Below, one piece after another: positions 3,985 to 64,000 of a stretch of DNA of 64,000 nt. Each line of letters opens with the position of its first letter. The stretch's first letter is position 1. The notes beneath the pieces are model-generated. The model ran no database searches. It was not told where the DNA came from and saw only the letters and a program-made list of their open reading frames with translations. The stretch comes from Hyaloraphidium curvatum SAG 235-1 (lineage: Eukaryota; Fungi; Monoblepharomycota). The translations under genes were made by a program, and so were the position numbers. The stretch covers positions 434,001-498,000 of the forward strand of contig JAIVFI010000009.1 in the NCBI GenBank assembly GCA_025558095.1. The letters run 5' to 3'.

Positions 3985-4095
3985 GTGCAGGGCAAGATCA
4001 GGGAAATCAATGCCCAAAAGTTCAAGGATCCGGCGAACGTGACAAACTGCACTTCTGGAGGATGTGTGACATGGACCTTTGGCCACATTTGCACC
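3985..4095 (+). mobile_element. Degenerate fragment of the LINE ORF2 C-terminal region
   Basis: gcaagatcagggaaatcaatgcccaaaag...aactgcacttctggagga matches 7950-8040 (REINAQK..DKLHFWR). Confidence 0.75.
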
Positions 4096-4116
4096 ACATG
4101 GCTCTGATGAGCATGA

Positions 4117-6345
4117 GTCGCAACTTTCTGGTGATCGTGCGGCTAGGGAAGCCACAGACCAACGTGGGGAGCCTGGAGGAGCATCTTCATCAAGCAGCGG
4201 AGCTCAGGGAGGCGCTGGGGCGGCTGGAACAGGCTCTAAGATACCTTTACCTACAAGGTCATCCAGCAGAGCTCCAAGACCTCCTGGGGAGTGGTGGAAA
4301 GCCCCCAACACGAGCAACGAGAAGGAGATCAACGTGATCACGCTGGAATCGATCAATTTCCTGATGGAGGAGGTCCAGGACCACCTGGACTGGCAGGGAC
4401 ACCTACCAACTTGGGAGGACATGGCACACATGGATGGAATCTTTGCTGCAAGCACTGGAGCACGTGTACCACGGAACTATGCAGAGGCAATGCGTTCAGA
4501 GGATCGTGAGATGTGGGCCAAGGCAATGGAACGTGAGATTGGCAACTTCAAGAGCAGAGATGCGTACAACATCATGGGCTTGCCTGAGGGCAAGGAAAAA
4601 TTCGCGGTTGGAAGCCAATTTGTATTTGACCTCAAACCTGGAGCTGATGGCAGCATTGTGGGGGAGGAAAACTACAAGGCTCGATGGGTGGCAAGGGGTG
4701 ATTGGCAGGATCCATCTTCTTTTGGTCAATCCTTTGCACCTGTACCTTCTGCTGCTGCTGTACGGCTTTTCTTTTGGATATCTGCTCAGAACAACATGAT
4801 TGTACATCAGGCTGATGCAAATGCTGCATTTCTACAGGCTAAGCTCCAGGAGAACGAGGAAGTTTACTTGTATCCAGCTCAAGGGATGGATTTACCTGAG
4901 TTTACTGATGGAAGACCTACTGTAATTCGACCTGGAGTCGCGGTTTATGGACTTGTGCAAGCTGCACGTGCTTGGCACAGACACCTGCACGAGATACTCA
5001 CGGAGATGGGGCTTATACGTTGCTCAAAGGAGTACTGCATCTACTTTCTGCGGCAAGATGATTGGTTTCTTTTGATGATTATTCATGTGGACGACTTTGG
5101 ATGTAGCTCAACGGACGAAAACCGGACGATTGCATTTCTTGAGGAGCTGGGAAAGCGGATTAAGATACGTTACATGGGTCGCATGAAAAAGTTCCTGGCT
5201 TTGGAAATCAAGCAAGACGAGAAGGCTGGAACAATCACAATCAAGCAGTCCAACTACATCAATAAGGCTTTGGAGGATTTCGGAATGGACACTTGCAATG
5301 CAGTTTCTGTACCTATGGACGTTGGGGTGAAGCTCAGGAAACGGAAGACGGAGTTGTCTGCTGCTGAGGAGCAGGAAATCGGACGTTTTCCGTTCAGATC
5401 AATGGTGGGAAGCTGGATGTATGCCATGAACTTCACCAGGCCGGACATTGCCTTACCTATTATCACGGAGAGCCGTCATGGGATGGCACCTACTCGTGAA
5501 GCAGTGGAGCAAGTCAAGAAGACAACCAGATACTTGAAGGGAACAGCTGACTTTGGCTTGGTTTACAAGAGGGATCCGAATCTGGACATGACCAAAGCAT
5601 TGCATGGATATGCAGACGCCAGTTTTGCTGGGGATCTTGACACTGGGAAGTCAACAACTGGGGTTGTAGTGATGATGGGGAACGGTCTTATCATCTACAA
5701 GTCGCAACTGCAACCAGTGGTGGCTCTTTCAACAACAGAGGCCGAGTACATGGCTCTATCTTATGCTGGACGTCAAGTTGCGTGGCTAAGGAGTTTATTG
5801 GAGGAATTGGGATTTCCTCAGCAAGGGCCAACAGTCATCAAGGAGGACAATGAGGGGGCTATCAAGCTGGCGCAGAATCCTGTCTTTCATGAACGTACAA
5901 AGCACATCGGAGTGCAGTACCATTTTGTGAGGGAGAAAATTGATAGTGGAGAGATACAGCTGGAGTACATCAACACAGAGGACCAGCTTGCGGATCTGCT
6001 CACCAAACAGCTACCAAGGGAGAAGTTTCAACGTTTCAGGGCACTTATGGGAATTGTAGAGATTCGTGACTAACTTTGGGGATTTCTGGACACTTCTTGG
6101 GAATCTTGCAACGAGGGGGAATGTTGGAATGGATCGTTGCTACGATTCTGTATCAATAGGGAGTCTATTGGCGTGTGGGGATACTTGGGTACAACCGGAG
6201 GGGTCATCTAGGGACTTGTCATCGCAAGGGAATGGACAACGGGTCAACGTGAAACTGTCCCTCTCCCCATCCCGTCCATCTGAGTTCTGACCCGGTTCAG
6301 ACCACTGGGGCTACGTCTTCCCCACGCCCCATAGCCACTCCAACA
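4117..6345 (+). mobile_element. 5'-truncated Ty1/copia LTR retrotransposon (open RT + RNase H, PPT, 3' LTR); gag, protease and integrase absent
   Basis: ORF 4079-6073 contains YKARWVARG, QADANAAFL, YGLVQAAR, HVDD, GYADASFA, STTEAEY, EDNEGAI, RTKHI and QLADLLTK; purine tract gaggggga directly precedes TGTTGG at 6122. Confidence 0.95.
6122..6345 (+). repeat. Copia 3' LTR (224 bp)
   Basis: Starts TGTTGGA and ends TCCAACA (inverted termini); homologous to the copies at 9520 and 11256. Confidence 0.93.
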
Positions 6346-6362: not shown

Positions 6363-8350
6363 ACCACATGGCTCTGATGAGCATGACCATCAAAGCCAGC
6401 CTCAAGCGACCGCCGCGAAAGAGAACAAGTTGCGTGGCAAACACGTGCCCTGTTTCCTCCACTTCCTCGCACTCATGCAAAATCTCTGGGACGAGGCGTG
6501 GGTGAAGGAGTCCATGCAGGAGTACGTGCAGATGGAGGCTGGCTTGGACAAGTGCAATCAGCTGATTCACATCATGGTGGCGGTGAACAAGGTGGCATTC
6601 ATGGAGAAGGAGGAGTGGAAGAGGGAGTGCCAAGGGAAGGCACGAGAGCTGGAGAAGGAGAGGAATGAAGAAGCTGGAGAAGAAGATGCGGAAGGTCGTG
6701 GAGCACAAGAACTCTGAGCTGCTGGAACGACTCTTCAGGCGAGAGCCCAAGGGATACTACCAACTGCTTGGGAAGACTTACGGGAGGCGGAAGGGCAACC
6801 CTGTGCAAATTGCGGAGCTGGTACGCCACATGGAGATGGTGGCCAGCGCCGAATACGTGACCAAGATCGAGGAAGACCCCAGGCTCACGTTCCCACCGCT
6901 CCCCAAGGCCACGATCACGCCTCCTGGGAACCTGCTGCGCCCCATCACCCTCAAGGAGCTCGAGAAGGTCCTGAAGAAGGCTCCTAACGGCAGGGCAGCG
7001 GATGAGGATGGGATCAGGCTCGAGTTCGTCAAGTACGGGAGCACTGTGCTGAAGCAAGCTGTTGTCGATCTGCTCAACGACGTACTCAATCGGGTCGACG
7101 TGCAAGACTGGGGCCAGACACTGCTGGTGATGCTGCACAAGAAGGGGCCCAAGAACGTGGCTGGCAACTATCGGGGCATCATCAGCATAGAGAGGACACT
7201 GGAGAAGGTCTTCTCCCTGGTCTGGAACGCTCGGCTAGCTCCCTGGGCTGAGTGCAACAAGCTGCTGGAAGGCTCGCAGTTTGCATTCCGGGCACGGAGG
7301 TCGAGCGTAGCCTTCATGCAGTATTCCTCCCTAAGGCGCTCTTCTCCTTGGCCAAGGCACGTACGTAAGGAGAAGCTGATCATGGTGTTTGTAGATTTCA
7401 TAAAGGCTTTTGACACGGTGGAGCACCCGAGGCTGTGGAGGAAGCTGGAGGAGATGGTTGTACCCAAACAGGTTGTTGATATGTTCGAGATGGCGTTTGG
7501 GCGGGTGTGAGGAAGGCTCCGGGATGAGGATGGCACCAAGTCGGACTTCATCAAGTTCCTAACTGGAGTGAAGCAGGGGGAACCCCCTCTCCGCGCTCTT
7601 CTTCACCTTGTTCATCAACGACATCACTGCTTTCATGGAGGCCAATGGTGCAAAAGGGATGGATCTGGGCATGGTGTTCGAGGACTGGCTTGTCTATATG
7701 CGATCCTCGCGAGAACCCTCTTGCAGTTCATGACCATGAGTCGGCTCTCAAGTTCCTTATGCGCATCAAACAGCTGCCCTGCATTGTACCTGCTCTACAA
7801 GGAGCTCAAGATCGAGGCACTGAAGGGGTGCTGGAACTGGGCCGCCTTCCTGAGGGAACTACTTGTAAACTATGGTGGAGAGGGGGGGAGGGAGATGTGG
7901 GAGAAAGACACTTTTTCATGGGCCAAGGAGACTGTGGAGAATCTTGTGAAGAGCAAGTTCAGGGAGATCAATGCCCAGAAGCTCAAGGACAACGACAAGC
8001 TGCACTTCTGGAGGACATGACCTTGGTCACATTGCACCGTCGCTGATCCGGGTGGAGAAGCACCGGAGGGACGTCCAGAAGCTGCTCTGCTCTACCCACG
8101 ACCTGGAGGTGGAAACAGGCAGGCACCAAGGACTTGAGGTGCAGCAGAGGATGTGCAAACACCACCTTGAGCACATTGGAGATGAACAGCATTTTCTGTT
8201 CCACTGTTCAGCAGATGCAGAGCGACGCCAGAAACTGCAGACCAGACTGGAAGCACTGGGCCGCGAGTGGAACATGGGGACCTGGCTCTGGGCTCTTAGC
8301 ATCAAGGAGTTCGAGCCCATGATCAAGGTGAGGCAGCAGAAGGAGAAGGC
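6363..8350 (+). mobile_element. Degenerate non-LTR retrotransposon (LINE) ORF2: RT with deletions, frameshifts and stops, plus Cys/His C-terminal motif
   Basis: KKGPKNVAGNYRGI, FVDFIKAFDTV, GVKQGEP, LEVETGRH...RMCKH...GDEQHFLFHC; close in sequence to 12250-13530; the YADD region is not seen. Confidence 0.9.
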
Positions 8351-11469: not shown

Positions 11470-13545
11470 GCGGCTAGGAAAGCGAGACTCGGACATGCCT
11501 CAAGATACTGTACCAAAACGTCGAGCGGAAGCTCGAGAAGAGCCTCTTTATACGTGAGCTGCTGCTACACATTGTAGAGTACGATATCGTCGTTTTCGCT
11601 GAAGCAAGGTGGACGGGCAAAGGCGAGAAGCGGACTTGGGAGGAGCATATGAGCAACAACGACATCCGCGCAGAGGTTGCCGCGGTACTGGAAACGTTCG
11701 AGGTTTATGAGAAGAGCTGCTCGGAGCATGGTGGAGGAGGGTTGACGGTCTTTGTGCGAAAGGAGCTACCGCACACCGTACGGACAGACTTGGACCCGAT
11801 CCTGGACGTCGTACAGATCCAAATCGGCGGAGTGAACGTGCTGGGGGCGTACATACCGCCGACGCCAACGCAGGACATAGTCACGCAGGACGAGATGTGG
11901 TCGAGGTTCTCAGGGATTGTGGCTGGGTGCGACATGCCGATCGTGATCGGGGACCTGAACGCACAATTGGGGATAAGCGAGGCAAACAGCGACGTGCGTG
12001 GCACGAGCTTCGGAAAGCGTGTAATCCGGTCGGAGCAGCGCACGGATCAGAGGGGGAAACAGCTACTTGCACTGTGCCACGAGGAGGAGCTGGTGATCCT
12101 GAATGGGCGCCTCGAGCCGGGGGCAACAACTCGCGCAGGAAAGGATGGCGAGCGGGACAGCACCTTGGACTACGCAATCGTGCCGCAGAGCTGCTACGGG
12201 ACGGTCACCCAGCTTACATTTGTGAAGGAAGGCTGGGTCGTCACCTCAGACCACATGGCCCTGAGCCTGACCATCAAGGCCAACCTCGTGCGACCAGCTG
12301 CGAAGGAGAACAAGCCGCACTGCAAGCCCGTGCCGTGCGACTTCCACTTCCTCGCAATAATGCGAAACCTCTACGACGAGCCCTGGGTCAAGGAGGCAAT
12401 GCAAGAGTACGAGCAACTTCAAGCTGGATCCGACAAGTGCAACCGGCTCATCCAGATCATGGCAGCGGTGAACAAGGTCGCGAAGAAGAAGTACGACAAG
12501 GTCAGCGTACACGAAGAGGCGGACAAGTTCCTCAACGGCTTTGCGGACTCGGCAGAGAGGGCCGAGATCGATCGGAAGCTGTCACGCACGCCTTCTTGAG
12601 CTGCGATCCCTCATGGAGAAGGACGAGTGGAAGAAGGAGTACCAGGGGAAGACGCGGGAGCTGGAGAAGGAGCGGAAGAAGTTGGAGAAGAGGATGCGGA
12701 GGGTTGCTGAGCGAGAGAACTCCAAGCTGCTAGAGCGACTCTTCAGGCGAGAGCCTAAGGGGTACTACCAGCTGCTTGGAAAGGCTCACGCAAGGCGCAA
12801 GGGCAACCCCGTGCCCTTTGCAGAGCTGGTGCGCCACATGGAGATGGTCGCCAGCGCCGAGTACGTGACCAAGATCGAGGAGGATCCAAGGCTCACGTTT
12901 CCACCACTTCCCAAGGCTACGATCACGCCTTCTGGAGACCTGCTGCGCCCCATCACCCTCAAGGAGCTGGAGAGGGTCTTGAAGAAGGCCCCCAACGGCA
13001 AGGCAAAGGACGAGGATGGGATCCGGCTCGAGTTCGTCAAGTACGGGACTGCAGTACTGAAGCAAGCTGTTGTCAACCTCCTCAACGACGTGCTCAATGG
13101 CGTCAAGATGGATGACTGGGGCCAGACACTGCTGGTGATGCTGCACAAGAAGGGGCCCAAGAACGTGGCTGGCAACTACCGAGGCATCAGCATAGAGAGG
13201 ATGCTGGAGAAGGTCTTCTCCCTGGTCTGGAACGCTCCGCTAGCTCCCTGGGCTGAGTGCAACAAGCTGTTGGAAGGCTCGCAGTTTGGATTCCGTGCAC
13301 GGAGATCGAACCTTCATGCAGTGTTCCTTGCCGAGGCACTCTTCTCCCTGGCCAAGGCACGCAAGGAGAAGCTGATCATGGTCTTTGTAGATTTCACAAA
13401 GGCTTTTGACACGGTGGAGCGCCCCAGGTTATGGCAGAAGCTGGAGGAGATGGGTGTACCCAAACAGGTTGTTGACATGTTCGAGATGGCGTTCGGGCGC
13501 GTGTGGGGACGGCTCCGGGATGAAGACGGGCTAGCAATTACCTAG
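11470..13545 (+). mobile_element. LINE ORF2: APE endonuclease plus RT N-terminal half, frameshift near 12590, 3'-truncated
   Basis: LKILYQNV...DIVVFAE (in frame upstream of the called ORF), GGGLTVFVRK, GAYIPP, IGDLNA, STLDY, SDH; then NYRGIS, QFGFR, VDFTKAFDTV. Confidence 0.93.
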
Positions 13546-14554
13546 GGAAGCGGGTCTTAGAAGGGGGGAATAACACAACAAACACCAGGAACGCCACTGC
13601 CTCATCCGCACCTGTCTCTGGGCGCCTGTGACCAGGGGTCTTTCATTTCTTCCTCTGTGAAACATGTGGAAATAGATGGTGGACCCGGGACCCGCATCTC
13701 ATCTCAAAAGTGTCAGAGTGCAGGGATTGACTGTGGACTGCATAGGCGCCTCTTCGTTCGGTTGCGGCCACCCGGGCCGCCGATCCTTGCCGCCCAGCAC
13801 TGCGCGAAAATTCGCATGACCGTGGCCAATGGGATACGCTGCATGACTTCCACATGAGTGCATGACTATCGAGCTGTCACACGCGGCAAAGCAGGCAGGG
13901 CGCCCGAGGGCGGCAATCAGCAGCCAAACCGGTGCTGCCCGCCGGCGTTTCGGGTTGCGCGTCGGGAAGCTTGTCAGCTGTCGCGCTGTGCAGGCGCAGA
14001 CACGATCAAAGCTTGTGCTGGTCCTCCCATCTCCTCACGGCTATGCAATGCATGAAGAATGAGCCCGTTCTCGGCAACCTGAGCATAGCTCTTCAGATAT
14101 CCCTTGAGCACTCGGGCAGGACGTTGGCTATGGGTGACACTGGCTCTTGCGACCACCCCCGTAGCATTGCCATCTGGCCTTGCGGGAAAGCCGGTTGAGG
14201 GCAATGATCGTTGTGGGCCTGATTTGCTCCGAGAACCGTCGACGTAATGGACTTTTGGACACCGGCCATCTCAGACGTTCTGGTGTGACGTCAGAAACCT
14301 AGCAGACATCCTGCACTCGGGGGCTTGGAAGGGGATCAGAACCCACGTCGGCGAACAGAAAAGTGCATAAAGCGGTCCGCTGGGGTGTTGTGCACCGGGA
14401 CAGGATGAGATCCAGGCTGACCGTGAACACCGTGGGATCCGGAGCTTGGCCGTCCCCATACTGTGTAAGGCCATGCTCGTGGAGCAAGACGGAGATCAGA
14501 CAAGGGAGTATCGGTGGACTTCAAATCCTCCGCCGGACTGTCCGAGACCCTTGA

Positions 14555-14979
14555 ATCATCGCGTCGTGCCGGAGGAGCGCCGATCTGGGCGGCGGTGCGG
14601 GGAGCGGGGGCCGGGCGCCCGGAGGGCGGCCGCAGGGGCCACATGGTGCGCAGACCGGCGTCTAAGGAATCTCTGAATGCCCTTTGGCGAAGTGGATCAT
14701 CGCGTCGTGCCGGAGGAGCGCCGATCTGGGCGGCGGTGCGGGGAGCGGGGGCCGGGCGCCCGGAGGGCGGCCGCAGGGGCCACATGGTGCGCAGACCGGC
14801 GTCTAAGGAATCTCTGAATGCCCTTTGGCGAAGTGGATCATCGCGTCGTGCCGGAGGAGCGCCGATCTGGGCGGCGGTGCGGGGAGCGGGGGCCGGGCGC
14901 CCGGAGGGCGGCCGCAGGGGCGACATGGTGCACAGACCGGCGTCTAAGGAATCTTACTGAAAGCCCTTTGGCGAAGTGG
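14555..14979 (+). repeat. Tandem repeat, 3 x 141 bp, containing a tRNA 5'-end (A-box/D-arm) segment
   Basis: ATCATCGCGTCGTGCC starts at 14555, 14696 and 14837; each unit ends with GCCCTTTGGCGAAGTGG. Confidence 0.93.
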
Positions 14980-15034
14980 ATATCGCGTCTGCCTCCGGAG
15001 CAGAAGGTCCCAGGTTCGACCCCTGGATGGGTCG
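14962..15034 (+). tRNA. tRNA-Arg(CCG), possibly a pseudogene (acceptor-stem mismatches)
   Basis: 73 nt; D-stem GCGA/TCGC, anticodon arm TCTGC-CT-CCG-GA-GCAGA, T-arm CCAGG-TTCGACC-CCTGG; acceptor AGCCCTT/ATGGGTC is imperfect; TTTT follows within ~10 nt. Confidence 0.85.
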
Positions 15035-15036
15035 GC

Positions 15037-17130
15037 GGACATTTTGCTGCGGTGGGTGACTGGCAGATCGCGGCGGGGCGGCTCGACGCCGCCCGCCGCC
15101 CCACCCCTCCCCAGCCCGCCGCCGCGCGCCAGACGTGCGCGCTTCGGTGCCGGAGCATCCAGGCCTGGTTTACTTCGTGGCGAAGAGTTTGTGCTTGCGG
15201 GGAAACCAATCAACCAGTCCTCGGCTCTTCCTGTCTCCCGAGCCGGCTTGCCATCCCCTGTCTAGCCGCCTCAGAGACATCTGTCAGATAGTTCCTTCCT
15301 TTCGCATTACACGCAAATAAGCTGGAGCTCCACCTAGCACCGTTCCTGCTCGGGGTGTGATCGAGATCGAAACCGTCGGGTACGCTAGCTCGCGACGCAA
15401 CTCCGGACGTTGCATTGCGAGCGCGTCTCCCGGGCCGTCACAAAATCCAATCTCTGCACCGGTGCTGCGCCCCCCACGGACCAATGAAATGTCCAGAAGC
15501 GCGTTGGAGTGGTCACTTGCACCTCCGGAGCAGGATTTGCTATCCCAGCCCCCCAGGGGGCGGGGCACCGCGGAACCGCCCGACGCAACCCGCAAGGGGC
15601 AGAGCGTCGAATGCCGACGAAACCACGACTCAACTATGTCTTAATCCTCGCTGATGAGACCGAAATTGTGATGGAACTTCCCGATTCATTCATGTTGCGT
15701 CTTTGGAGGGAGCTTTGGCGGAACCGAACCGCAGTGCCAAGTCGGGTCCGGGGAGCCCGTGGAGCCTCGGCCAACGACACCACAGCACTCATGCAATGTG
15801 TCTTGACCAAAAAATGGGCCTTCCAGAGGTGCATCGGATGCCCGGCACCCGTCCAACGGTTTCCGGATTCCCGTTGTCGAAGGACGCCATTCGCGCCCAT
15901 GCGCGTCGGGAAAGCTCCTCCATCGCCAGCAGTATCTTCATAAGCACCGAATCAAACAGTCTCGCGCAACGGGAGCCACCTCCTGGCGGCGGGAATGCCA
16001 TCCACCTCGGGCCCGCGATGACTGTGCGGGTGGCGCCGGAGCAACTCGGCCAGCGACGCGGTCGGACGCAAACGGAGCACTCGGCGACGGCGACGGCACA
16101 TGATGCTGTCGTTTCCGCGCCCCGCCCGGGCCCCGTCGCTCTCCGTGGGCGGCGCAGCAGGGCCGCGAATTGGGTCGCCCCGAAGGCCCCGGGGCCCGGC
16201 CCCCGGCGGCGAACTCGGCGCCTCCCGCCGGCCAGGGGCGTTTTGAGCACCCAGAATCACCATTGCGGCAGGGAGGCACGGCGGCACCGCCCTCGCGTGT
16301 GTGGAGTATGACTTGTGCTACGATCGCGATCGTCGCACGCATACACTTCGAAGACTGGCGCTACACCGGTCCCGGGGCGACCTGCTGGCCGCCGCTCTGC
16401 GGCTCTGAAAATCCCCGCGGACGCGCATCTCGAGGCGGCGGCCCTTTTCCCGGCCCTCGCTCGGCCCCGCTCGAGCTTTTCGGCGCCCCAGCGGCGACCT
16501 GGACCTGGGTCTCGCAGCGCGCTGGCCGCGGCCTCCTGCGCGCGTTGGGCGGTGCCAAAAGCACTTTAGAAGTCGGGAAGACGATGCGGGCGTCGGGAGG
16601 TGGCGCCGGCCCACCCGGCGGAGGCGTTCCCCCGCGGAAGGCCCCCATGTTCAGTGGGTGCCCTTGCTCCCTCGTCCTGCCGAATCCCTGACGCAGTGCG
16701 GCCCATTCAAGCCATTGATTTGACTCTGGACAGCGACGAGGACGGAGAGGCCGTCTCCGCGCCGGGATCTGCTCAAGTCGGTCCGTCGTTCAACGACGCC
16801 GTCGATCCTCGTCCCACGGTTCGTCTTCGTGCCCTCGCCGGTAGGATTGCGTCGCTGACAACTCGTTTCCAAAGGCCCGGCCTGTGCAGGAGGTCGTCTC
16901 GGCCCCAGCAAAGCGCATGCACGAGAATGCGTCATCAGGTTGGGCGGCCGGACCGCCGTGATCTTTCCCCGCTGACCATTCCACGCAGAAGCGATCAACC
17001 ACAAGATCTCGAAGTCCGTGCCGGATGTCCAGCTGGGAGCCACCTCTCCCAAGTCGAAAAAGGTTGGTCGAGGAACGCCTCCACTTTGCCTCCCCACCCG
17101 AGCTCATCGCTGTCCCTCTCCAGCCGCGGA
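15037..17130 (+). repeat. Long direct repeat, copy 1 (5' part of the ~5-kb tandem unit)
   Basis: 15860-16690 is near-identical to 20770-21600 (offset 4911); weaker colinear matches extend back to ggacattttgctgc at 15037/20094 and forward to cagccgcgga. Confidence 0.85.
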
Positions 17131-19963
17131 CTGATACCGCGCGTCTTCCTTCTTACGGCTCGACTTCTTTGTCCAAGGATCTCTTTGGATCCGGCAACAA
17201 GTCCGGCTCAAGTGCGTGTTTGCCGCGATCGGCGCTCTCGGACGCATCTGACGCCTCCATGTATTGCAGCCGATCTTCCGATCAACATCTACCAGTATTT
17301 CCTCGCGACGATGGAGCAGTACGCCAAGGAGGCAGCGATCCCCTACGAACGGCTGCAGGCCGGCATCTGCGTCCTCGCACAGCTCGGCGCGATCAAGCAC
17401 ATCGACCTCACCCCCGGCAAGGAGCACCTCGTCCTGGACCGGGCCAAGGTCCACGAGGCGGGCGCGCATTGCCTCGATTGCCTCTACGCAAAAGATTTCT
17501 TTGAGCACGGGGTCAAGTTTGCGCTGGTGAAACCGTCCGGGGACGACCTCAAGTTCCCATCCGACGTCCGCCTTCACCCGTACATGGGGACCGCCGAGGA
17601 TCTGGTGCAACGGAACAAGGACGCCCTCCACGGAAAGCTCAAGCTGTACGGCGAGATGGCGGAGTGCCATTGCCTCGGGCACGGCATCGGCTCGCCCGCG
17701 CTGAACAACCCCGCGGAAGAGGCGCTCATCTTCATCGTCAAACTCGCTGTGGGATCCCACGCCGGGAACTCCAGCCCGTACTCCAAGATTCCGTTTTTTC
17801 CGCGCCCGGCGAAGAATGCCGAACTGGACATTCTGCGGACGATGCGTGCCAAGCTCTTTGTATCCGCATACAACTCCCCGCCTTTTCTCGCGCTCAACAG
17901 CGGCGCCGACTGCTCGGCCGTGCGAAACCCCGGACAGCCTCACGAGGGCTACCTGAGTCGTTCCTTCGCCACGAACAATGAGCTCATGGGGCACCAGCCT
18001 CCGCTCGCTCTGAACGAGTACCCTAAGATTCCCTGCCCCCAGCTCCCAACGGCGCATATCTCCATTGCCGACCAGAAAGCCGCGAAGCGCGACTTTTTCG
18101 CCAAGCTCGAGCCGTACCCGGACGTTCTGGGCCTCCTCTTCTTCGGCGACCGCCCGACCGAGATCGTTTCAATCGTCTCGGCTCCAGGGTGGGGCAACGA
18201 GACCTGGATGGGCAAGCCCCGGTTCGCCACCGTGACGCTGGATGAGCTGCGGAGTCGCTCCTTCTTTGCCGCCGCTTTTCTCGACACAGCGATCGTCGGC
18301 TACGCCCAAGGCGCGGCTCGCGTCCTTGCGCTTGGTTACTTCTTCGAGTTGGACAGGTGCACGATCGAGCTCACGGACTACATCCTGCGCATGCGGAAGC
18401 TCTTCGGCGTCCAAGAGGTGCTCAATAAGGCCCGCACGATGTGGGACGAGTCGCTCGGGCCCCGGATGCTCCAGCGCGCCGAGGCCCTCAGGCCTGTGTG
18501 GAACGTTCCCAAGGGAGGCGGTGCCGGTGAGCACATCGCGATCGATGCCTCGAGGGTCTCGGCTGATCGCCGCGCCATTCGCAGAGCTCCACCAAGGCTT
18601 GTCGGCAGACGAGTCCGTCGCTCCCAACGGCCTGCCGGACTACAAGGTCGACCTCTCCTCGCTGCGCCCGGACTTCGAAGCTACCTTCGCGGACTGGAAG
18701 CAGTATCACGGCTGCGATGCGAACGTGGCAGTCGACCAAAGCTCGCTCCGGATCGACGACGAGGCGGACGAAGATCTGAGCAACGCTGAGCGTCTCGATC
18801 GGGAGGCGTCGCTGAGAGCTGCGGAACTCCTCACGGACTTGACTTTCTCGGATGCCGAGGTCGTCAGGAAGGCTGTGCTGGTGCAGAGCACGGGGATCGC
18901 CCGTGCCGCGAAGGAGAAGGCTGCCGATCGTGCGGAGCGGTCTTCCCGCACGGAGCTGCGCCACATGGCGTTCCAGACAGTCGAGGACTACGACAACCTT
19001 CCCGAGGCGGAACAGGAGGCCGTCTTGGGGCGGATGAAGGCAACGAGAGGCATGGAGCGGCTGCGGAGGCTCGAGGTTGGCATAGTCAAGTTTGCTGCGG
19101 AGCTCGGCCTATTGCCCGAGAAGCTGCCCGATCTGGCCAAGCTCGACGAGCCCACTCTCCGGAAGCTGATCGACATTGCGACCATGAAGCTTAATCGGTA
19201 CCGCCAGCTGAAGCCGTACTCGGACTTTGCGATCCTTGCGCACTGTCTCGTCTGCCGCAAAGACTACTGCAAAGAGTTTCGCCGCAACGTCGAGGACTCC
19301 GAGGAGAACGAGAAAACGCCGCATCCGAAAGCAGGCGGCTGCACTGCGAAGAAGCTCACGATGGGATGGACTGCTCTTCCTTCCTACCCCGGCATCGAAA
19401 GCCTCGAACCCCTCATCAACGTCTTCATCGCGTTCATGGATGCCGAGGCCCTGAAGCGCCCCGATCGGATCCTTGTGATCAACCTCGCGCAGGTCGCCAC
19501 CAGCTTCGCTATGCTGGTACGCGACTACGAGGCTCAGGGCCATGCTCAGGCCGTCTACCTCGCCGACAAGTACAAGCTCATCATGGAGTTCTATGTCAAG
19601 CAGCAGTCGCTTGTCGACTGGCTCGGGGACTCGGACGAGGCCGTGGCGCAGAAGAAGGCGCTCAAGAACGGCTTCATCGAGGGGCTGAAGGAAGGCCTCG
19701 ACCGTGCGGGCCGCTGCGCCGTTGCGAGCCGCGTGCCGCAGCCTCTTGAGAGCGACTCCAAGTCGCTTTCTATTTATGCGTTCGGCTCCCTGAAGACGCA
19801 GCGTTCGGCGGCGCAGTACGAGGAGCTCGAGGACCGCACCTACTTGAACTATGCCGCAGTGGTCAACGCGCGCAAGATGACGGATAACGCCGTGAGCAAG
19901 AAGCGGGGCGAGCGGCGCAAGGCGGGCAACCAGGCCATCGACCGCTTCCTGGTCAAGAAGTAG
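16584..19963 (+). CDS. Spliced orphan protein (~1000 aa) with SIM-like IDLT, GIY-YIG-like motifs, CxxC motifs and a C-terminal PIP-box-like tail
   Basis: Phase-compatible GT-AG introns (e.g. 17212-17269, 18527-18584) join small 5' exons to exons 17270-18526 and 18585-19963; the splice sites are conserved in the paralog at 61-64 kb. The start could be 16308. Confidence 0.8.
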
Positions 19964-20093
19964 AATCGGTGCGGAGACTTAGAGTTCTATGCAACGGGAT
20001 GTTTGATGTATCGATCTGTATCTGTGTTGGTATACGGTCATTTGCATGCGCGTTGGCGACGATTTTTGCTGCAGCCGTGGTGGGGGTCGATCT

Positions 20094-22048
20094 GGACATT
20101 TTGCTGCAGCCGTGGTGGGGGTCGATCTGGGCACAGCCGGCCGGAGGCGGCGCTACCGCCGCTCGCGCGCACGTCCGCAGGGCAAAGTTGAAAATCCAGG
20201 ATTTCAAATCTGCGGAATACCATCCCGTTGCTAGTCCCTGCGTGCGATTGTGCGGACGGGATCTGGAACTGCTTTTACGCTCGTGAGGCAACCTACGACA
20301 GTGCCTCTCGAGCGTCTCTCCGCCCCCCCCCCCCGTTCGCAAACTCCATCTCTGCACCGCAGCTCCGCCGAGGACACTTCCCACGGACCAATGAAATGCC
20401 CAGAAGCACGTTGGAAGCTCCACTCGCACATCCGGGGCAGGATGCGGTCTGCCCGCCGCCTCGTTGGAAAGGAGCGCGGAACCGCCCAACGTGGACGAGG
20501 CCGGGACCCGCTGAGCGGTCGATCGACGAACGCCGACCTGAATCGCGATCAATCGCCTCTTCTTCGCTCGCTGACGCCCTCGGAGACGCGCTGGAGGGAC
20601 CCGATTCGTTCTGTTCCGCCTTTGAGGGAGCGTGTGCTGGACCCCGATGGTAACTCGTCCGGCGAGCCATCAGAGCCTCAATGAGCGACCTTCCAGCGCT
20701 CATGAAATGTGCCTCGAAACCAGAAATGAGCTCCCAGAGATGCTTCGCGCTTCATGAGCCCGGCCATAGGTTTCCGGATTCCCCTTGTCGAAGGACGCCC
20801 TTCGCGCCCATGCGCGTCGGGAAAGCTCCTCCATCGCCAGCAGCATATTCATAAGCACCGAATCAAACGGTCTCGCGCGACGGGAGCCACCTCCTGGCGG
20901 CGGGAATGCCATCCACCTCGGGCCCGCGATGACTGTGCGGGTGGCGCCGGAGCAACTCGGCCAGCGACGCGGTCGGACGCAAACGGAGCACTCGGCGACG
21001 GCGACGGCACATGATGCTGTCGTTTCCGCGCCCCGCCCGGGCCCCGTCGCTCTCCGTGGGCGGCGCAGCAGGGCCGCGAATTGGGTCGCCCCGAAGGCCC
21101 CGGGGCCCGGCCCCCGGCGGCGAACTCGGCGCCTCCCGCCGGCCAGGGGCGTTTTGAGCACCCAGAATCACCATTGCGGCAGGGAGGCACGGCGGCACCG
21201 CCCTCGCGTGTGTGGACTATGACTTGTGCTACGATCGCGATCGTCGCACGCAGACACTTCGAAGACTGGCGCTACACCGGTCCCGGGGCGACCTGCTGGC
21301 CGCCGCTCTGCGGCTCTGAAAATCCCCGTGGACGCGCATCTCGAGGCGGCGGCCCTTTTCCCGGCCCTCGCTCGGCCCCGCTCAGGCTTTTCGGCGCCCC
21401 AGCGGCGACCTGGACCTGGGTCTCGCAGCGCGCTGGCCGCGGCCTCCTGCGCGCGTTGGGCGGTGCCAAAAGCACTTTAGAAGTCGGGAAGACTATGCGG
21501 GCGTCGGGAGATGGCGCCGGGCCGCCCGGCGGAGGCGTCCCACCGCGGAAGGTCCCCATGTTCAGTAGGTGCCCTTGCTCCCTCTTCCCGGACGAATCCC
21601 TGACGCGATGCGGCTCTCTTCAAGCCATCGATCTCAGCCTGGACAGCGACGACGACGGGGAGGCCGTCACCGCGCCGGGATCTGGTCAAGTCGGTCGGTC
21701 CTCCAACGACCCCGTCGATCCTCGCCCTGCGGTTCGTTTTCCTGCCCGCGCCGGTCGAGCTGCGTTGCTGACAGCTTCTTTCTTCATGTTCAGGCTGCCC
21801 AGAATGACGTCTCGGCCCCCGCAAAGCGGAAGAGCGAAAACGCCTTGGCTGGTGGGTGGCCCGCCGTCGCGCTCTTAACACGCTGATCACCCAACGCAGA
21901 AACGAGCAACGGCAGGATTTCGAAGTCATCGCCGGATGTCCAGCTGGGAGGCAGCTCTCCCAACTCGAAAAAGGTTGGTCGAGGAACGCCTCCACTTTAT
22001 TTGCCTCCGCAGCCCGAGCTGATCGCTGTCTCTCTCCAGCCGCGGACG
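20094..22048 (+). pseudogene. Long direct repeat, copy 2: upstream region and first exons of the orphan gene, truncated
   Basis: Same exons (PMF|TIDLSLDSDDDGE; ISKSSPDVQLG...SKK) with conserved splice sites; homology stops at about 22045. Confidence 0.8.
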
Positions 22049-22243
22049 GACCGGCCCTTTTTTTGGCTCGGCGGAGCTGATGCGGGGTGAAGGCCTCGGA
22101 GGCGGCGACTCGCGGCTGGCGCCGTCCGAACGCCAAGCGCCAGAGTTTGTGGCCCGGATCCCGGAGGGCGAGGATCAGCCTTGCGGGAAGATTTGCGGGC
22201 TGCCGAACTGGGTATAGTAACGCAACGGTAAACATGACCACTA

Positions 22244-44737: not shown

Positions 44738-46453
44738 TCATCCTTGCGCCGAGAGGGCGCCGATATCCAGATCCAGAACGGCGCGCTCCTCCAGTGGGGA
44801 ATTGGATGCGACGATGGCGGCAGAGTGGCCGGGCCCACCGACCGAGACCTCGAAGCAGCCGAAACCCTGCGCCCGTATTTCCGCCATGACCTTGTCAACA
44901 AGGTCTTGCGGCGTGCCTGTGAATGGAGGAGCACTGACTGAGCACGAACGGTGCCCGATCTGCGCAAGTGCGACCACGCACCATCGGGTACCAATGTAAG
45001 TGCACATCCTCCGCCGCCGCCTCCGGTCAGCTTGGAAGCTAATCCGTGCCTTGCGGTGATGGAGCGCACGGATTCGAGCGTCGGATGGCTCGTCCCTAGC
45101 GCGGACAGAAGCGAGTGGTTCATGTCGACGAGCAGCTGATGTGTTGGGAGAGTGAACTCGATGCGCTAGGCGTAGTCCATCGGAAGCCCTCCTACCTGAA
45201 GCCGCCCCTGAATTTCCTCTCTGGAAGCTGCGTGCCAAGAGGCGACAGGAATTACTCAACCGCCGTGCGGGCCTTCACGTAGCCATACATGTCAACACCA
45301 ACCTCCCGACACAAACAGGGATTTGCACGTCGTGCTCACGGCACCAATGGCCTCGATGATGGGGTCGACAAGATCCGGCAGCTGATCCAACGGGTCACTC
45401 GTTGGCCCATTGCTTGAAAACCGACTGTACCTCGTCCCGCCGTTTCCGCACGTTCGCCACCTGCAGCATGGTGTTTTTCGGCACGTTGGTGTTTGTTATC
45501 AAGAAGGTTGAGGCCTCGAACCCGGGGACGTCGTCCACTTGCGCCTTGCCCCGCGTGAACATTTTGGCTCCACCTTGCAGAGGAGGTTAGACGATCGGCG
45601 AGGGCAAGACTGACGTGCGTGACCCAAACCGTAGGTGCAAAGAGTGTTGTCGATGCCGGAAGGGTTGCCGTGGATGACCTTTTCCGCCATGAAAGCCCAA
45701 CCGTTGATAGTGGCAGGGTCTGGCTGGGCAATGTCGGGGCCTTGCGCTGAGCCCAAAGCACCAAAGAGACAAAGGAGTCCCGCCGAGATCACGACACTGT
45801 ACGAGGCAGAAGAACCCAGCCCTGCGCCCACAGGCAGAGCGGACCTGACTACCACCGACACGCTCGTGTTGTCGCTGGGGTGCGAAAGAAGCGATTGGCC
45901 GACAATCAGGATCCAGATGAGGGTACAAGAAGGGAAAGTAGGCGCACCGATGTGTAGACAGCGAGCAGTAGAGGTAGAGGAAGGCGACTGCGGCGGGGAG
46001 CTGGTTCGCGCCCCGGAGTGGTTCCGGCACGAGGGCCTGCAACTGGGCTGCCATCTCATCCGAGACGGGTTGCGGGTCGGAAGATGAGGTCTCTGTGTCA
46101 AAGGCATCGCAGCAATGAGCTGGAGACCCAATTTGAGGTTGACAAGTGGCCCGCACCTCCCGACCGAGGTGCGGCCGAAGCCAACGACGCGGTGTCCCAC
46201 GTGGCATCGAATCCAATATCCGGCAGCTGCAGCCGCACTACGGGCGTCGTCGTGCTTTCGGAACTCTCAAAGAGGCCGTACGTTCGGAGGTCAATGCTGA
46301 CCGCGATGGCGGGCTAGAGAGGGGTGGGAGAGGGGAAAAGGTCCACCGCTGCTACGAAGGTAATCGCGCCCGCGAGAAGCCGACCTTGCCGTAGACGACC
46401 CCATGCTCGCCAAAGAGAATGACTTTGCCCGGCGCGGAGGCCAGGACCTTCAT
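44738..46453 (-). CDS. ERG12: Mevalonate kinase
   Basis: SAPGKVILFGEHGVVYGK, LPVGAGLGSSAS, EKVIHGNPSGIDN, SKLTGGGGGGC. Confidence 0.95.
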
Positions 46454-48249: not shown

Positions 48250-48752
48250 CGAACGCTCCATTGGCTGCCAAACTCCTGCCGTATCCTTGAGCAAGATTAC
48301 ATGCATGTTTCGGAGTCATTAGGGAAGATATTGATTGCACAATTCAGTTCTCCGCTGAGGAGGGTAATGCTAGAGGCGCCAATGGACTTTGCAACTGCCT
48401 CGGTGGTCTCCAAACACTCCAGGTGTCTCTAGGCACGGGACATGGCAATTAGGTAGCGGACAAAGAGCGTCCTGCTCTTAGACAGGCTAAGCCCTAGACG
48501 TTCGTCGCCCTCCCCCGACTTCCCTCGGCCAATCTCGCCTTGGTGCCCTCCAAAACCCTGGGCGCTCCTTTATCCAGTCCGCGGAGAGCTGCTGTCCCGG
48601 GGCACGGTGACAATTGATCGCCAGTCCTCGCCGCGCTGGTTTCCAGGCGCTTGCGCTCCTTTCCCGTCGACCAATCGACGGTCAAGATTCGGATCAGCGC
48701 ATCTTTGGGAGGCAACATTGATCACGTGCTTCTCAAAGTCCGCTTGATGCAG
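48250..48752. repeat. Diverged third copy of a ~500-bp repeat (other copies at ~46690-47200 and ~49368-49875)
   Basis: aacgctccattggctgccaaactcctgccgta...cttgatgcag occurs three times. Confidence 0.85.
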
Positions 48753-48756
48753 ATCA

Positions 48757-61102: not shown

Positions 61103-64000
61103 TCACGGCTTCTTCTGGAAGAAGTCGCTGACCGAGAGCTGCGAGGGGTCCTTCTTGCCTGCCGCTTTTTTCGCCTTGCCCTCGGCTTGCCTCTTGCGCG
61201 AGCGCTGCATGCTGATGGTTCCGTCCGCGACGGTGCGGGCGTCGACGATGGTCTGGTAGCCGAGGTAGTCGAGGTTCTCCAGCTCGAGGTACGTCTCCTC
61301 CCCGAGGTTGCGCGCGATCGACCCGAAGGCAAAGATGGTCAGAAAGTCTTTGTCCGCCTCGAAGCGTCGGGGCTTCCGCTTCGCGACGAAGCGCCCAGCC
61401 CGCGCGAGGCCTTCGACCATGCCCTTGCCGAAACCCGACTTGAGCGCGTGCTTGACCTCGACGACCTCGTCCGTGTCACCAATCTCGTCGGCGAGGCACT
61501 TGATTTTGATGAAGAAATCTATGACCGGCTCGTAGATGTCGACGAGGTAGAGGGCCTGGAGGTGGCCGGCGGCCTGCAGTTCGCGCAGAAGGGAGCCGAA
61601 AGTGCTCGCGACCTGCGCAAAGTTGATGACCAGGATGCCGTCGTGGTTCGCCTCGGCCTCGTCGTCCAGCGCGGCGGCGAGGAGGTCGGTGACTGGCACG
61701 AAGTCAAAGCGCACGCCGGGGATGGAAGGCAGGCACGTCCACCCCTTGGTGAACTTCTTGATCGCGCAATTGGACCCGCCGCCCTGCGGATGCGGCGAAT
61801 GGCCGTTCTCGAGCGAGCCCGGCTTGTCCTTGCGCATGGTCCGGCAGAAGTCCTTGTTGCACGTGAGGCACTGAACCAGCTCCGCCGTGGGCGAGTACGG
61901 CCGGAGCTGGTTGTGCCGATCGAGCTTCATGACGGCCGTCGAGACGATGCGCTGCGCCTCTGCTTCGTCGAGCGCGGTAAAGTCAGGCTCCGGCCCCGAC
62001 ATGAGACCGAGTCGGTACGCGGACGTCGCGGCGCCGATCTTGATCCGCCGCGCGAGGGTCGCGGAGAGCGCGGCCTTCATCTCCCGCAGGCGCGCCTCCT
62101 GAGCAGCTTCCGGCAGAGCGTCGTAGTCCGGGAAGGCCTCGAATGCCATGTACCGGAGACGTGTCCGCGACGCGCGCTCGGCCCGATCGGCGGCCTTTTC
62201 CACCGCCTCGCGCACCTCCTTTGCCTCGGCTTTCTTTTCTCCGACGAACGTCATCTTCTTGACCGCTTCTTTGTCGCCGAAACGAAGCTGGGTCAGGATC
62301 TCGGCGGCCTCGATCGCCGCCTCGATCTGTGCAGGCGAGGCGTCACCGAGATCGTCCTCCTCGCTCTCCGCCGTCCGGCTCGCGCTCTCGGCCTCGGCCG
62401 TGATCGCATCGCAGCGGTGGTACTGCTTCCAGTCCGCAAATGTCGACTCGAATTCCGGCCGCAGAGAGGAGAGGTTGACCTTGTAGTCGGGCAGGCCGTG
62501 GGGAGCGACGGACTCGTCGGCCGACAAGCCTTGGTGGAGCTCTGCGAATGGCGCGGCGATCAGCCGAGCTCCTCGAGGCATCGATCGCGATGTGCTCACC
62601 GGCACCGCCTCCCTTGGGAACGTTCCACCAGGGCCTGAGCTCCTCGGCGCGCTCGAGCATCCGGGGCCCAAGCGACTCGTCCCACATCGTGCGGGCCTTC
62701 TTGAGCACCTCTTCGATGCCGAGGAGCTTCCGCATGCGCAGGATGTAGTCCGTGAGCTCGATCGTGCACCTGTCCAACTCGAAGAAGTAATCAAGCGCAA
62801 GGACGCGAGCCGCGCCTTGGGCGTAGCCGACGATCGCCGTGTCGAGGAAAGCGGCGGCAAAGAACGAGCGATTCTGCAGCTCGTCCAGCGTCACGGTGGC
62901 GAACCGGGGCTTGCCCATCCAGCTCTCGTTGCCCCACCCCGGAGCCGAGACGATTGAAAAGATCTCGGTCGGGCGGTCGCCGTAGAAGAGGAGGCCCAAG
63001 ACGTCTGGGTACGGCTCGAGCTTGGCGAAAAAGTCGCGCTTCGCGGCTTTCTGGTCGGCAATGGAGATATGCGCCGTTGGGAGCTGGGGGCAGGGAATCT
63101 TAGGGTACTCGTCCAGCGCGAGCGGAGGCTGGTGCCCCATGAGCTCATTGTTCGTGGCGAAGGAACGGCTCAGGTAGCTCTCGTGAGGCTGTCCGGGGTT
63201 TCGCACGGCCGAGCAGTCGGCGCCGCTGTTGAGCGCGAGGAAAGGCGGGGAGTTGTACGCGGATACAAAGAGCTTGGCACGCATCGTCCGCAGAATGTCC
63301 AGTTCGGCATTCTTCGCCGGGCGCGGAAAAAACGGAATCTTGGAGTAGGGGCTGGAGTTGCCGGCGTGAGAACCGCCCATCAGCTTGACGATGAAGATGA
63401 GCGCCTCCTCGGCCGGGTTGCTGAGCGCGGGCGAGGCGATGCCGTGCCCGAGGCAGCGGCACTCGGCCATCTCGCCGTACATCTTGAGCTTGCCGTGAGG
63501 GGGGTACGCGTTGCGCCGCACAAGGTCGTCCGTGACCCCCATGTAGGGGTGCAGGCGGTCGTCCGAGGGGAAGCGGAGGTCGTCCCCGGACGGCTTCAGC
63601 ACCGCGAACTGCACGCCTTGATCGAAGAAGCTCTTGCCGTAGAGGCACATAACGCATTGGACACCGGCTTCGTGGACCTTGGCCCGGTCCAGGACGAGGT
63701 GCTCGTTCCCGGGCGTCAGGTCGACGTACTTGATGGCCCTGAGCTCGGCGAGAACGCAGATGCCGGCCTGCAGCCGCGCAAGAGGGATTGCTGCCTCCTT
63801 GGCGTACTGCTCCAGCTTCGCGAGGAAGTACTGGTAGATGTTGATCTCAAGACCGGCTGCAGTACGTGGTAGCGTCAGTTGCGGCCGAGAGCGCCGATCG
63901 CGGCAAACACGAACTGGGAGAGGAATCGTCGCCAGATCCAAAGAGATTCTTGGGCAAAGAACTCGAGCCGTAAGTAGGAAGACGCGCGGTATCAGTCCGC
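61103..64000 (-). CDS. Paralog of the 16.6-20 kb GIY-YIG-like/PIP-box orphan; 5' end outside window
   Basis: Same exon structure and intron positions; GVQF..YMGVTDDLVRR..H..E..N; ends QLSVSDFFQKKP*. Confidence 0.85.

Follow-up and report, generated by a model that had tools for sequence, protein, structure and literature searches.

The pairing of a lesion or mismatch recognition module with a GIY-YIG nuclease in one chain has precedents. In Methanococcales the GIY-YIG domain (COG1833) is fused to endonuclease III in proteins of the MJ0613 type, and a MutS-GIY-YIG lineage also exists (PMC1564403). The modules of such GIY-YIG fusions have been suggested to act together in excision repair (PMC1564403; abstracts on MSH1). 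Human UNG2 is tethered to PCNA via a terminal PIP box (PMC8053108), and TDG is SUMO-linked to judge from the title of PDB entry 1wyw. The motif-E asparagine of GIY-YIG domains is missing in SLX1 (PMC1564403). For the pairing of a nuclease with a glycosylase, the only described analogue that we found is archaeal and has a different glycosylase fold.

The window analyzed here is a stretch of 64,000 nucleotides from the genome of the freshwater fungus Hyaloraphidium curvatum. It contains, at 16647-19963, a real, expressed nuclear gene (copy 1), which is placed together with its copies as follows.

16647..19963, plus strand: coding sequence of copy 1, 7 exons, 991 aa (GT..AG joints in contigs of run X1, sequence reading)
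16647-16653, 16712-16818, 16875-16938, 16989-17062, 17124-17211, 17270-18526 and 18585-19963, plus strand: exons of copy 1
18527..18584, plus strand: intron of copy 1, GT..AG, 58 nt, phase 1, skipped in a contig of an RNA-like run
15388..16646, plus strand: upstream region of copy 1, conserved and transcribed, with homologous sequence at copies 2 and 2' and at the truncated copy
20246..22050, plus strand: truncated third copy, with the upstream region, exons 1-4 and part of exon 5
61103..64000, minus strand: copy 2, running past the window edge (NCBI KAI9026923/KAI9026926, 1009 aa)

The exons of copy 1 sum to 2976 nt, giving 991 aa and a stop, and the ATG at 16647 opens an N-terminus reading M-F-T-I-D-L-T-L-D-S-D-E-D. 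Several RNA-derived contigs of run X1 correspond to copy 1 with zero differences and contain six GT..AG joints. A first-pass annotation of this DNA had proposed that removal of the intron at 18527-18584 joins two reading frames into a protein of about 1000 aa; the RNA-like contigs and the NCBI models agree, and the same run supports five more introns in the 5' part (16654-16711, 16819-16874, 16939-16988, 17063-17123, and 17212-17269). The junctions of the NCBI models P0002 and P0003 are identical to those of copy 1 wherever they overlap, and the junction at 18527-18584 reads ...KGGGA-ELHQGL... in the models of both copies. The C14 paralog has no intron across the equivalent junction. The two halves are one protein and not two, as the intronless paralog L007 (992 aa) encodes both without a break in its reading frame.

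The RNA-like contigs cover the region upstream of copy 1 from 15426 onward. This region matches the genome at these four gene-adjacent places and no others, and what is repeated is the gene together with this region, at 4 places only. Between the copies, 15388-15837 is indel-rich and 15838-16587 is 93-98% identical; the whole is a promoter and/or a long 5' leader private to this gene. The paralog announced at 61.1-64 kb was confirmed: with 80% identity, 15388-19721 aligns to 65750-61384 (minus strand). The 5' exons of this paralog and the region upstream of them extend to about 65783 in window numbering, and a twin copy lies 7614 bp further along as a tandem duplicate. The truncated third copy was equally real; it shares 95% identity with 65783-63992, in the 5' part of copy 2, and 84% with 15438-17134. 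Genome-wide there are about 7 loci of this gene in 32 Mb, and the older paralogs, at 22-26% identity, each keep an open frame. Two of the H. curvatum copies carry gene-conversion tracts, and the copy-number changes are clustered on contig 9 (the tandem 7614-bp duplication, the truncated copy, and the conversion tracts). Copy 1 has ordinary genes on its border as well as a zone that contains remnants of copia and other reverse transcriptases, and one Umbelopsis member lies among housekeeping genes, so that the earlier description of the gene as found only in repeat-rich zones does not hold generally.

By sequence comparison, the copy 1 protein is a member of a rare, unnamed family of fungal proteins. 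Searching 1.84 billion representatives gave 15 proteins, from Hyaloraphidium, Gonapodya, Umbelopsis, and a few further assemblies, all annotated as "hypothetical protein" or without a name and all without a Pfam domain. Neither Pfam, PHROG, nor PDB gave a sequence match to the copy 1 protein, and no published description of the family was found in the literature searched; the first-pass reader, who recognized no known transposable element or repair protein in it, was right in that no housekeeping or transposon family matches. The AlphaFold model of the N-terminal half (pLDDT 81) matches two folds, GIY-YIG and the UDG superfamily, in models built on alignments of 9-15 sequences only. Comparison of the models recovered 2 independent GIY-YIG structures and more than 7 UDG-superfamily structures, each mostly covered. 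Foldseek on the models returned no significant match; the GIY-YIG fold expected from the first reading is predicted in the AlphaFold model of the N-terminal half, with no significant match by Foldseek or by hhalign (see below). The parts of the protein, several of them predicted, are the following.

16714..16743, plus strand: SIM-like motif I-D-L-T-L-D-S-D-E-D at the extreme N-terminus (sequence motif)
17290..17460, plus strand: small helical or winged-helix-like subdomain before the nuclease (model)
17461..17784, plus strand: predicted GIY-YIG-type nuclease domain (fold match and conserved residues)
17842..18399, plus strand: predicted UDG-superfamily fold domain (model match)
18587..18913, plus strand: acidic linker, poorly conserved (alignments; dN/dS 0.5)
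18914..19230, plus strand: long helices with conserved RxxAF and DxLPxxEQ (model helices 2-22, 31-63, and 79-99, pLDDT 81-92)
19232..19381, plus strand: putative zinc ribbon, CxxC at 19244-19246 and 19253-19255, short strands at model 107-156
19415..19798, plus strand: alpha/beta region with weak winged-helix-like matches
19928..19951, plus strand: degenerate PIP-like motif NQAIDRFL after a basic stretch (sequence motif)

The subdomain preceding the nuclease is modelled as helices 2-15 and 19-32 plus a hairpin (pLDDT 84-90), and its language-model features cluster weakly with replication-initiator-type HTH (score 0.92). In the nuclease domain, numbered on the translation of window 17290-18525, the catalytic-type residues are Y66 (17485-17487), Y98 (17581-17583), G100, R108 (17611-17613), E143 (17716-17718), and N160 (17767-17769). 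All six are invariant or nearly so among 15 relatives that are just 17-28% identical; E143 and N160 are invariant in alignment A4, and Y66, which belongs to a conserved (L/V)YxK and corresponds to Y184 of P0002, does not vary in the full-length alignment. The first-pass annotation had listed residues in GIY-YIG order, and its Y, YxG, R, E, and N are indeed kept in further, distant paralogs and in other fungi. Its "GV(K/Q)F" was rejected as the GIY strand, being neither conserved in the family nor in the right place by the fold match; (L/V)YxK is placed there instead.

The predicted core is a three-stranded sheet flanked by helices, in the order strand-strand-helix-strand-helix shared with GIY-YIG nucleases of the I-TevI and T4 EndoII type (PF01541 superfamily), and in the model the conserved residues sit on the secondary-structure elements expected of that fold. 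Like I-TevI, the domain would have a Tyr on strand 1, Tyr-x-Gly on strand 2, and an Arg 10 residues after the second Tyr (YVGSAKDFEKR in I-TevI, YMGTAEDLVQR here), and, as in GIY-YIG nucleases, a Glu in the last helix with an Asn 17 residues later. The I-TevI match begins by pairing model residue 62 with residue 2 of the chain, and these ranges would set Y66 opposite I-TevI Y6. The distance between the GIY and YIG tyrosines is about 32 residues, whereas it is about 11 in I-TevI (Y6, Y17). The family has an insertion of about 20 residues between the two strands, and C61, C128, and H131 are additionally conserved. Unlike the small phage and intron ORFs, the nuclease is embedded in a 1000-aa multidomain, intron-containing eukaryotic protein. 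It also differs from PF01541 GIY-YIGs in going unrecognized by the Pfam model (PF01541 matched no family member, and scanning the genome in six frames at E up to 10 gave no match at this locus) and by profile-profile comparison (hhalign against T4 Seg/I-Tev GIY-YIG domains, E 0.52 across just 9 columns, not significant). The sole Pfam GIY-YIG match in the genome is on contig 28, away from this locus, and is taken to be an SLX1-type gene.

The middle domain is modelled as an alpha/beta/alpha fold with a four-stranded parallel sheet, for which UDG structures stand clear of the next-best fold. With family-4 UDG and UdgX (PF03167) it shares a motif A position after strand 1 and a motif B position after strand 4. 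Motif A is SAYNSPP in the window (YNSPP in the window copies) and VGTAPP in the family consensus, which resembles motif A of the GEAPG and GLAPA types. The catalytic or water-activating residue of UDG motif A (GQDPY, GEAPG, or GINPG) is missing there in most members, and no acidic or Asn residue is conserved family-wide. Motif B is FLDTA in the window and [D/H/E]-x-[S/G/A] in the family (LDTA, SDSA, PDPS, PHPG) instead of HPS(P), its histidine being mostly D or E. A GxRPT is conserved after strand 3. The iron-sulfur cysteines of family 4 have no counterpart, with no cysteine of the UDG-like region invariant across the 15 aligned sequences, and PF03167 matched nothing in the family, including in a genome-wide six-frame scan. 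The degenerate UDG-like fold suspected in the first-pass annotation is thus supported as a predicted fold, but the Pfam match, the HPS motif, and the Fe-S cysteines are absent; these absences, with YNSPP at motif A, make glycosylase activity doubtful.

In the C-terminal half, the helices at 18914..19230 gave generic helical structure matches only. Both copies have the CxxCxxxxC..H..C cluster described earlier, but only the two CxxC cysteines (C220, C223) are invariant family-wide and the later C/H ligands vary; the ribbon may bind zinc. The alpha/beta part is probably DNA-binding. A SIM was taken to be a hydrophobic core [VI]-x-[VI]-[VIL] or [VI]DLT with an acidic/Ser run after it, and the match here is at the level of the sequence motif only. 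It is present as first described (TIDLTLDSDED) in copy 1; copy 2 has MFTIDLSLDSDDDGD. IDLSLDSDDD is common to copy 2 and the truncated copy, whose SIM exon is visible in an ORF. One further relative, P0015, has EVVDLTE at the opposite end of the protein, the C-terminus, and the motif is otherwise absent outside the C9 copies. A PIP box was defined as Q-x-x-[ILMV]-x-x-[FY]-[FY], usually terminal and adjoining basic residues. Both ends named in the first-pass annotation exist: copy 2 ends, after a Lys-rich run, in QLSVSDFF, a canonical PIP box, while in NQAIDRFL of copy 1 N replaces Q and L replaces the last aromatic. The motif is not conserved family-wide. The C14 paralog ends in QKTLSFGSEK and Gonapodya in NQKLDR, neither a canonical PIP and both without the two aromatic positions, and the Umbelopsis member has none. 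Because PIP and SIM are restricted to few members, candidate PCNA/SUMO targeting is a lineage-specific add-on and does not define the family.

The best explanation, which we consider to have an even chance of being correct, is a host nuclear, non-transposon enzyme that fuses GIY-YIG and UDG folds and would incise DNA at a recognized base. Its N-terminal half would join a GIY-YIG-type nuclease with a full set of catalytic residues to a UDG (family 4/UdgX-like) fold, and the C-terminal half would contribute long helices, a CxxC zinc ribbon, and an alpha/beta part that probably binds DNA. The UDG-fold domain would bind DNA and inspect or flip one base, be it damaged, mispaired, or modified. It may be a reader that does not remove the base, because its pocket motifs, though kept in place, are unlike those of the known glycosylase families. 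The neighboring GIY-YIG domain would then nick the strand beside the recognized site, while the C-terminal half would help to hold the DNA and might bring two molecules together. In the H. curvatum chromosome-9 copies, the added N-terminal SIM and C-terminal PCNA-box-like tail could recruit the enzyme to replication or repair sites. More tentatively, we suggest that base recognition by the UDG fold steers the fused nuclease to nick beside a damaged or modified base, a one-protein "recognize and nick" that would be linked with PCNA and SUMO at H. curvatum replication forks and might serve defense against foreign DNA or DNA with uracil or modified bases.

A DNA-binding or scaffold protein in which neither domain is catalytic, for example, a base or structure reader recruiting factors via SUMO and PCNA, would fit the UDG-fold motifs, which are unlike those of every catalytic family, the docking motifs at both ends of the C9 copies, and the large, helical, fast-evolving C-terminal half (dN/dS 0.4-0.66). 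We consider it unlikely, since both Tyr and the Arg, Glu, and Asn of the GIY-YIG domain persist in very divergent members, a conservation hard to account for without catalysis.

The gene could also be selfish, either free-standing and homing-endonuclease-like or mobile, spreading by cutting and repair copying, which would explain the copies and the patchiness. GIY-YIG domains are characteristic of homing endonucleases and of Penelope elements (PMC1564403); the duplication, truncated copy, and conversion tracts of contig 9 lie near one another, the distribution is sparse, and copy 1 adjoins the zone of reverse-transcriptase remnants. However, no inverted or direct terminal repeats bound the gene unit, the protein has no reverse transcriptase, transposase, or recombinase domain, and there is no second ORF. 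Six spliceosomal introns interrupt the gene and the 1.26-kb upstream region is private to it, its old paralogs remain open, its loci are few, and the neighbors of the Umbelopsis copy are housekeeping genes. Between copies with dS up to about 1, the nuclease and UDG parts show a dN/dS of about 0.2. No tRNA lies beside the other copies. The selfish element entertained in the first-pass annotation thus found no positive support; the gene is best read as an ordinary nuclear gene and not a transposon, and we rate a selfish origin as slightly the less probable of these two alternatives. Coincidental resemblance, for example, in an RNA- or protein-directed enzyme that mimics the GIY-YIG/UDG order, could arise from models built on so few sequences, but it is quite improbable given the independent structures recovered for both folds, the lead of the UDG structures over the next fold, and the exact coincidence of the conserved residues with the matched fold's catalytic positions.

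Should the domain predictions hold, the family would be the first UDG-fold/GIY-YIG fusion and a candidate base-directed incision enzyme for fungal DNA repair or genome defense, and it could yield a nicking enzyme specific to a modified or damaged base. The H. curvatum copies, with their conversion tracts and fast C-terminal half, offer a small natural experiment on the gain of docking motifs (PIP, SIM). The C9 copies have the same kinds of terminal motif as human UNG2 (PIP box) and TDG (SUMO-linked), but as lineage-specific candidates at opposite protein ends, and there is no orthology between the catalytic domains. SLX1 (GIY-YIG plus RING, partner SLX4) is likewise a eukaryotic nuclear GIY-YIG protein with a C-terminal cysteine-rich element, whereas the present family keeps the motif-E Asn, has no RING pattern, and carries an extra UDG-fold domain. 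The proposed logic would be akin to that of EndoV, EndoQ, or MSH1. With the MJ0613-type fusion and plant MSH1 (MutS plus GIY-YIG), of both of which it would be a eukaryotic counterpart, the family shares a recognition module and a GIY-YIG domain in one chain; here the module is predicted to have a UDG fold instead of helix-hairpin-helix or MutS, the nuclease comes first, and the protein is fungal, with a large additional C-terminal half.

Hyaloraphidium curvatum is a monoblepharid freshwater fungus, and its assembly comprises 32 Mb in 55 contigs; the window, taken from contig 9 (434001-498000), is GC-rich (62-65%). Both long ORFs of copy 1 reported in the first-pass annotation were present in the sequence (16600-18789 and 18242-19963). 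The intron proposed to separate them, 18527-18584, was borne out, since it begins with GT, ends with AG, lies in phase 1 (joining KGGGA to ELHQGL) and is skipped in RNA-derived contigs. Over 15200-20400, the contigs of the single public run holding this stretch gave six GT..AG joints:

16654-16711, + strand, intron 1, GT..AG joint in run contigs
16819-16874, + strand, intron 2, GT..AG joint in run contigs
16939-16988, + strand, intron 3, GT..AG joint in run contigs
17063-17123, + strand, intron 4, GT..AG joint in run contigs
17212-17269, + strand, intron 5, GT..AG joint in run contigs
18527-18584, + strand, intron 6, GT..AG joint in run contigs

Several of these contigs correspond to copy 1 without any difference, and a 1.5-kb contig covering the C-terminal exon is identical to it where copy 2, the minus-strand paralog running from 61103 past the window edge, is about 30% different. 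The six spliced joints and the contigs identical to copy 1 indicate that the run is RNA-derived and that transcription and splicing take place at copy 1 itself. From the ATG at 16647 the exons total 2976 nt, giving 991 codons and a stop, with the N-terminus MFTIDLTLDSDED. The same junctions are found in the NCBI models of copy 2 (P0002, 1009 aa, two identical accessions) and copy 1 (P0003, partial). The contig-14 paralog provides an independent line of evidence that the two ORFs make one protein, since it carries one 992-codon frame across both halves. Copy 1 was searched exon by exon, and full-length comparisons used P0002 and this intronless paralog (L007).

The unit at 15388-19721 aligns with 65750-61384 (minus strand) at 80% identity, and the copy 2 unit is present again 7614 bp further on. 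The fourth contig-9 copy is truncated:

20246-22050, + strand, truncated copy with the upstream region and exons up to 5, 95% identical to copy 2

Copies 1 and 2 match in a mosaic pattern, at 93-98% identity over 15838-16587, 95-99% over 17788-18537 and 67-85% in the remainder, and dS drops to 0.09 in the UDG-like block from 0.7-1.2 elsewhere. This pattern suggests old duplicates with recent gene-conversion tracts, which are probably the two high-identity segments, the first of them in the non-coding upstream region. For the same pair dN/dS was 0.2 across the nuclease and UDG-like parts, against 0.4-0.66 in the C-half (helices, CxxC and an alpha/beta part). Contigs 14, 21 and 2 carry three distant paralogs (25-32% identity). 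The 1.26 kb upstream stretch, 15388-16646, is conserved beside all four contig-9 copies and nowhere else in the genome. RNA-like contigs cover it from 15426 on, and Rfam gave no match to it, returning just the tRNA; the stretch may be either a long 5' leader or an independent non-coding RNA.

A four-paralog profile searched against 1.84 billion representative proteins found 15 proteins at E <= 0.001: the H. curvatum genes, one from Gonapodya sp., several from Umbelopsis ramanniana and U. isabellina and a few from further assemblies, every one labelled 'hypothetical'. In a tree built without two short fragments, a clade of Hyaloraphidium and further-assembly proteins stood apart from a Gonapodya and Umbelopsis clade. 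Pfam found no domain in either copy 1 exon or in the 15 members, returning two sub-threshold rows at chance level. Neither PHROGs nor the PDB, the latter queried by sequence with single members as well as profiles, gave a match, and a word-indexed protein search returned the H. curvatum genome's own proteins alone. By features, the ESM Atlas gave nothing for the C-half and weak HTH/replication-initiator rows for the N-half. A UDG-like orphan at 51.3-53.7 kb showed no link to the family HMM at E <= 1. We class these proteins as a so far unnamed family of fungi whose members would combine two known DNA-enzyme folds in a new way.

The N-half (a helical subdomain followed by the two putative enzyme domains) was modelled with AlphaFold2 from the 15-sequence alignment (412 residues, mean pLDDT 81, pTM 0.75). 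In that alignment Y98, G100, R108, C128, H131, E143, I147 and N160 are invariant or nearly so (numbering of translated window positions 17290-18525), and the full-length set shows Y66 to be invariant as well. The model places Y66 on the first strand within a conserved (L/V)YxK, the Tyr-x-Gly on the second strand, the Glu in a long helix and the Asn after that helix, so that the conserved residues sit where a GIY-YIG fold needs them. As in I-TevI, the Arg follows the YxG Tyr by ten residues, at the start of a helix. The GV(K/Q)F previously read as the GIY strand falls in an insertion of about 20 residues that separates the two strands, and the family does not conserve it. Foldseek searches of PDB and BFVD with the N-half and C-half models gave nothing at E <= 0.001. 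When the nuclease region was compared by hhalign with six T4 GIY-YIG domains, the YxG box alone aligned (E 0.52), and PF01541 matched other H. curvatum genes genome-wide but none of the family. On the predicted structure, this region likely adopts a GIY-YIG fold.

The UDG-like middle, offered earlier as a weak suggestion, turned out stronger than proposed. An exhaustive structural aligner placed TDG, MUG and further UDGs among the matches of the N-half model, lower in the list; an Atlas search by shape gave nothing beyond one UDG row (TM 0.48 by target). A motif-A-like VGTAPP follows strand 1 (YNSPP in the window copies), GxRPT is conserved after strand 3, and D/H/E-x-S/G follows strand 4. These are the positions of the UDG pocket loops, although the residues are unlike those of any catalytic UDG family, and the 15-sequence alignment has no family-4 iron-sulfur cysteines. 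PF03167, too, matched other H. curvatum genes genome-wide and none of the family. The model thus gives us good confidence in a UDG fold for the second domain; since sequence methods confirm neither fold, we rate the GIY-YIG and UDG assignments alike, as likely rather than established.

Copies 1 and 2 and the truncated copy all carry a SIM-like IDL(T/S)LDSD(E/D)D at their N-termini; beyond the contig-9 copies, the only SIM-like motif is EVVDLTE at the C-terminus of the relative P0015. Judged against the published PIP-box consensus (PMC8053108), copy 2 ends in a canonical box, QLSVSDFF, after a Lys-rich run. The tails of copy 1 (NQAIDRFL), of the contig-14 paralog in another frame (KKQKTLSFGSEK) and of the Gonapodya protein (NQKLDR) are not canonical, and the Umbelopsis models have no PIP box. 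What recurs in the monoblepharid members is thus a basic tail carrying a Q/N-x-x-aliphatic remnant, while a functional-looking PIP box is, from these sequences, confined to one lineage. PCNA recruitment as a family property was therefore overstated, the canonical box being in copy 2 alone. The H. curvatum PCNA gene, on contig 13 at about 231.8-232.7 kb, comprises at least three exons.

The gene had also been proposed as a possible selfish element. Copy 1 does lie between a zone of copia and other RT remnants and the ordinary genes Elp4/PAXNEB, Obg GTPase, Es2 and M50 peptidase, and its left flank is TE-rich:

4079-6073, copia-type RT ORF, RVT_2 at E 6e-40
12541-13545, RT fragment, RVT_1 at E 2e-12, repeated at 6599-7533 with 87% identity

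No inverted repeats bounding the unit were found, nor did the gene show a domain of a transposase, RT or recombinase. An Umbelopsis member sits among arginine-biosynthesis and other housekeeping genes, and one member of a further assembly is beside SOD and SURF4. The features are not transposon-like: together with the private upstream region and the dN/dS of 0.2, they point to a family of host genes that has duplicated locally rather than to selfishness.

Among the H. curvatum copies checked, a tRNA adjoins the gene in copy 1 alone. This tRNA-Arg(CCG) is intact, occupies 14962-15034 and precedes the unit start by about 350 bp; a 141-bp tandem array overlaps its 5' part, the two together taking up 14552-15034. 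The Gonapodya member has a tRNA-Glu 1.7 kb upstream (L013, 2383-2454), probably a coincidence. The contig-14 paralog is preceded, at a distance of 1.9 kb, by a tandem array of about 21 units of 148 bp each (L007 664-3843; contig 14, 468663-471842). The unit contains a tRNA T-arm-like GCAGGTTCGAATCCTGC and has no sequence similarity to the 141-bp array; ARAGORN identified no tRNA among these repeats. The ORF adjoining the contig-2 family fragment at 545160-545558 (L006, 369-974) is a tentative tyrosine-recombinase candidate: its C-terminus resembles the recombinase box (HSPRRGGATY...GDWNSDAYRLY), but Pfam gave no match. The window also holds a 1.8-kb direct repeat (46071-47879 and 48748-50552, 98.7% identity) with 0.5-kb partial copies, including 48252-48752.

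Taken together, the evidence best supports a nuclear enzyme that processes DNA, whose activity and substrate we infer. The UDG-fold module would recognise a base, the fused GIY-YIG nuclease, with its complete catalytic set, would incise near it, and the C-half could add to the DNA contacts and perhaps mediate self-association. The contig-9 copies would additionally have gained SUMO- and PCNA-docking motifs, with presumed partner binding. The earlier interpretation was thus largely right on the domains, and overstated in making PCNA a family property and in its emphasis on selfishness. The PCNA-docking motif of the contig-9 copies recalls the PIP box of UNG2 (PMC8053108), and their SUMO-docking motif recalls SUMO-linked TDG (PDB 1wyw). 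We found no UDG-GIY-YIG fusion in the literature; the nearest precedents are the MutS-GIY-YIG proteins, such as plant MSH1, and MJ0613, an endonuclease III-GIY-YIG fusion of Methanococcales (PMC1564403). For the MJ0613-type fusion, a cooperative role in excision repair was put forward by Dunin-Horkawicz et al. (PMC1564403).
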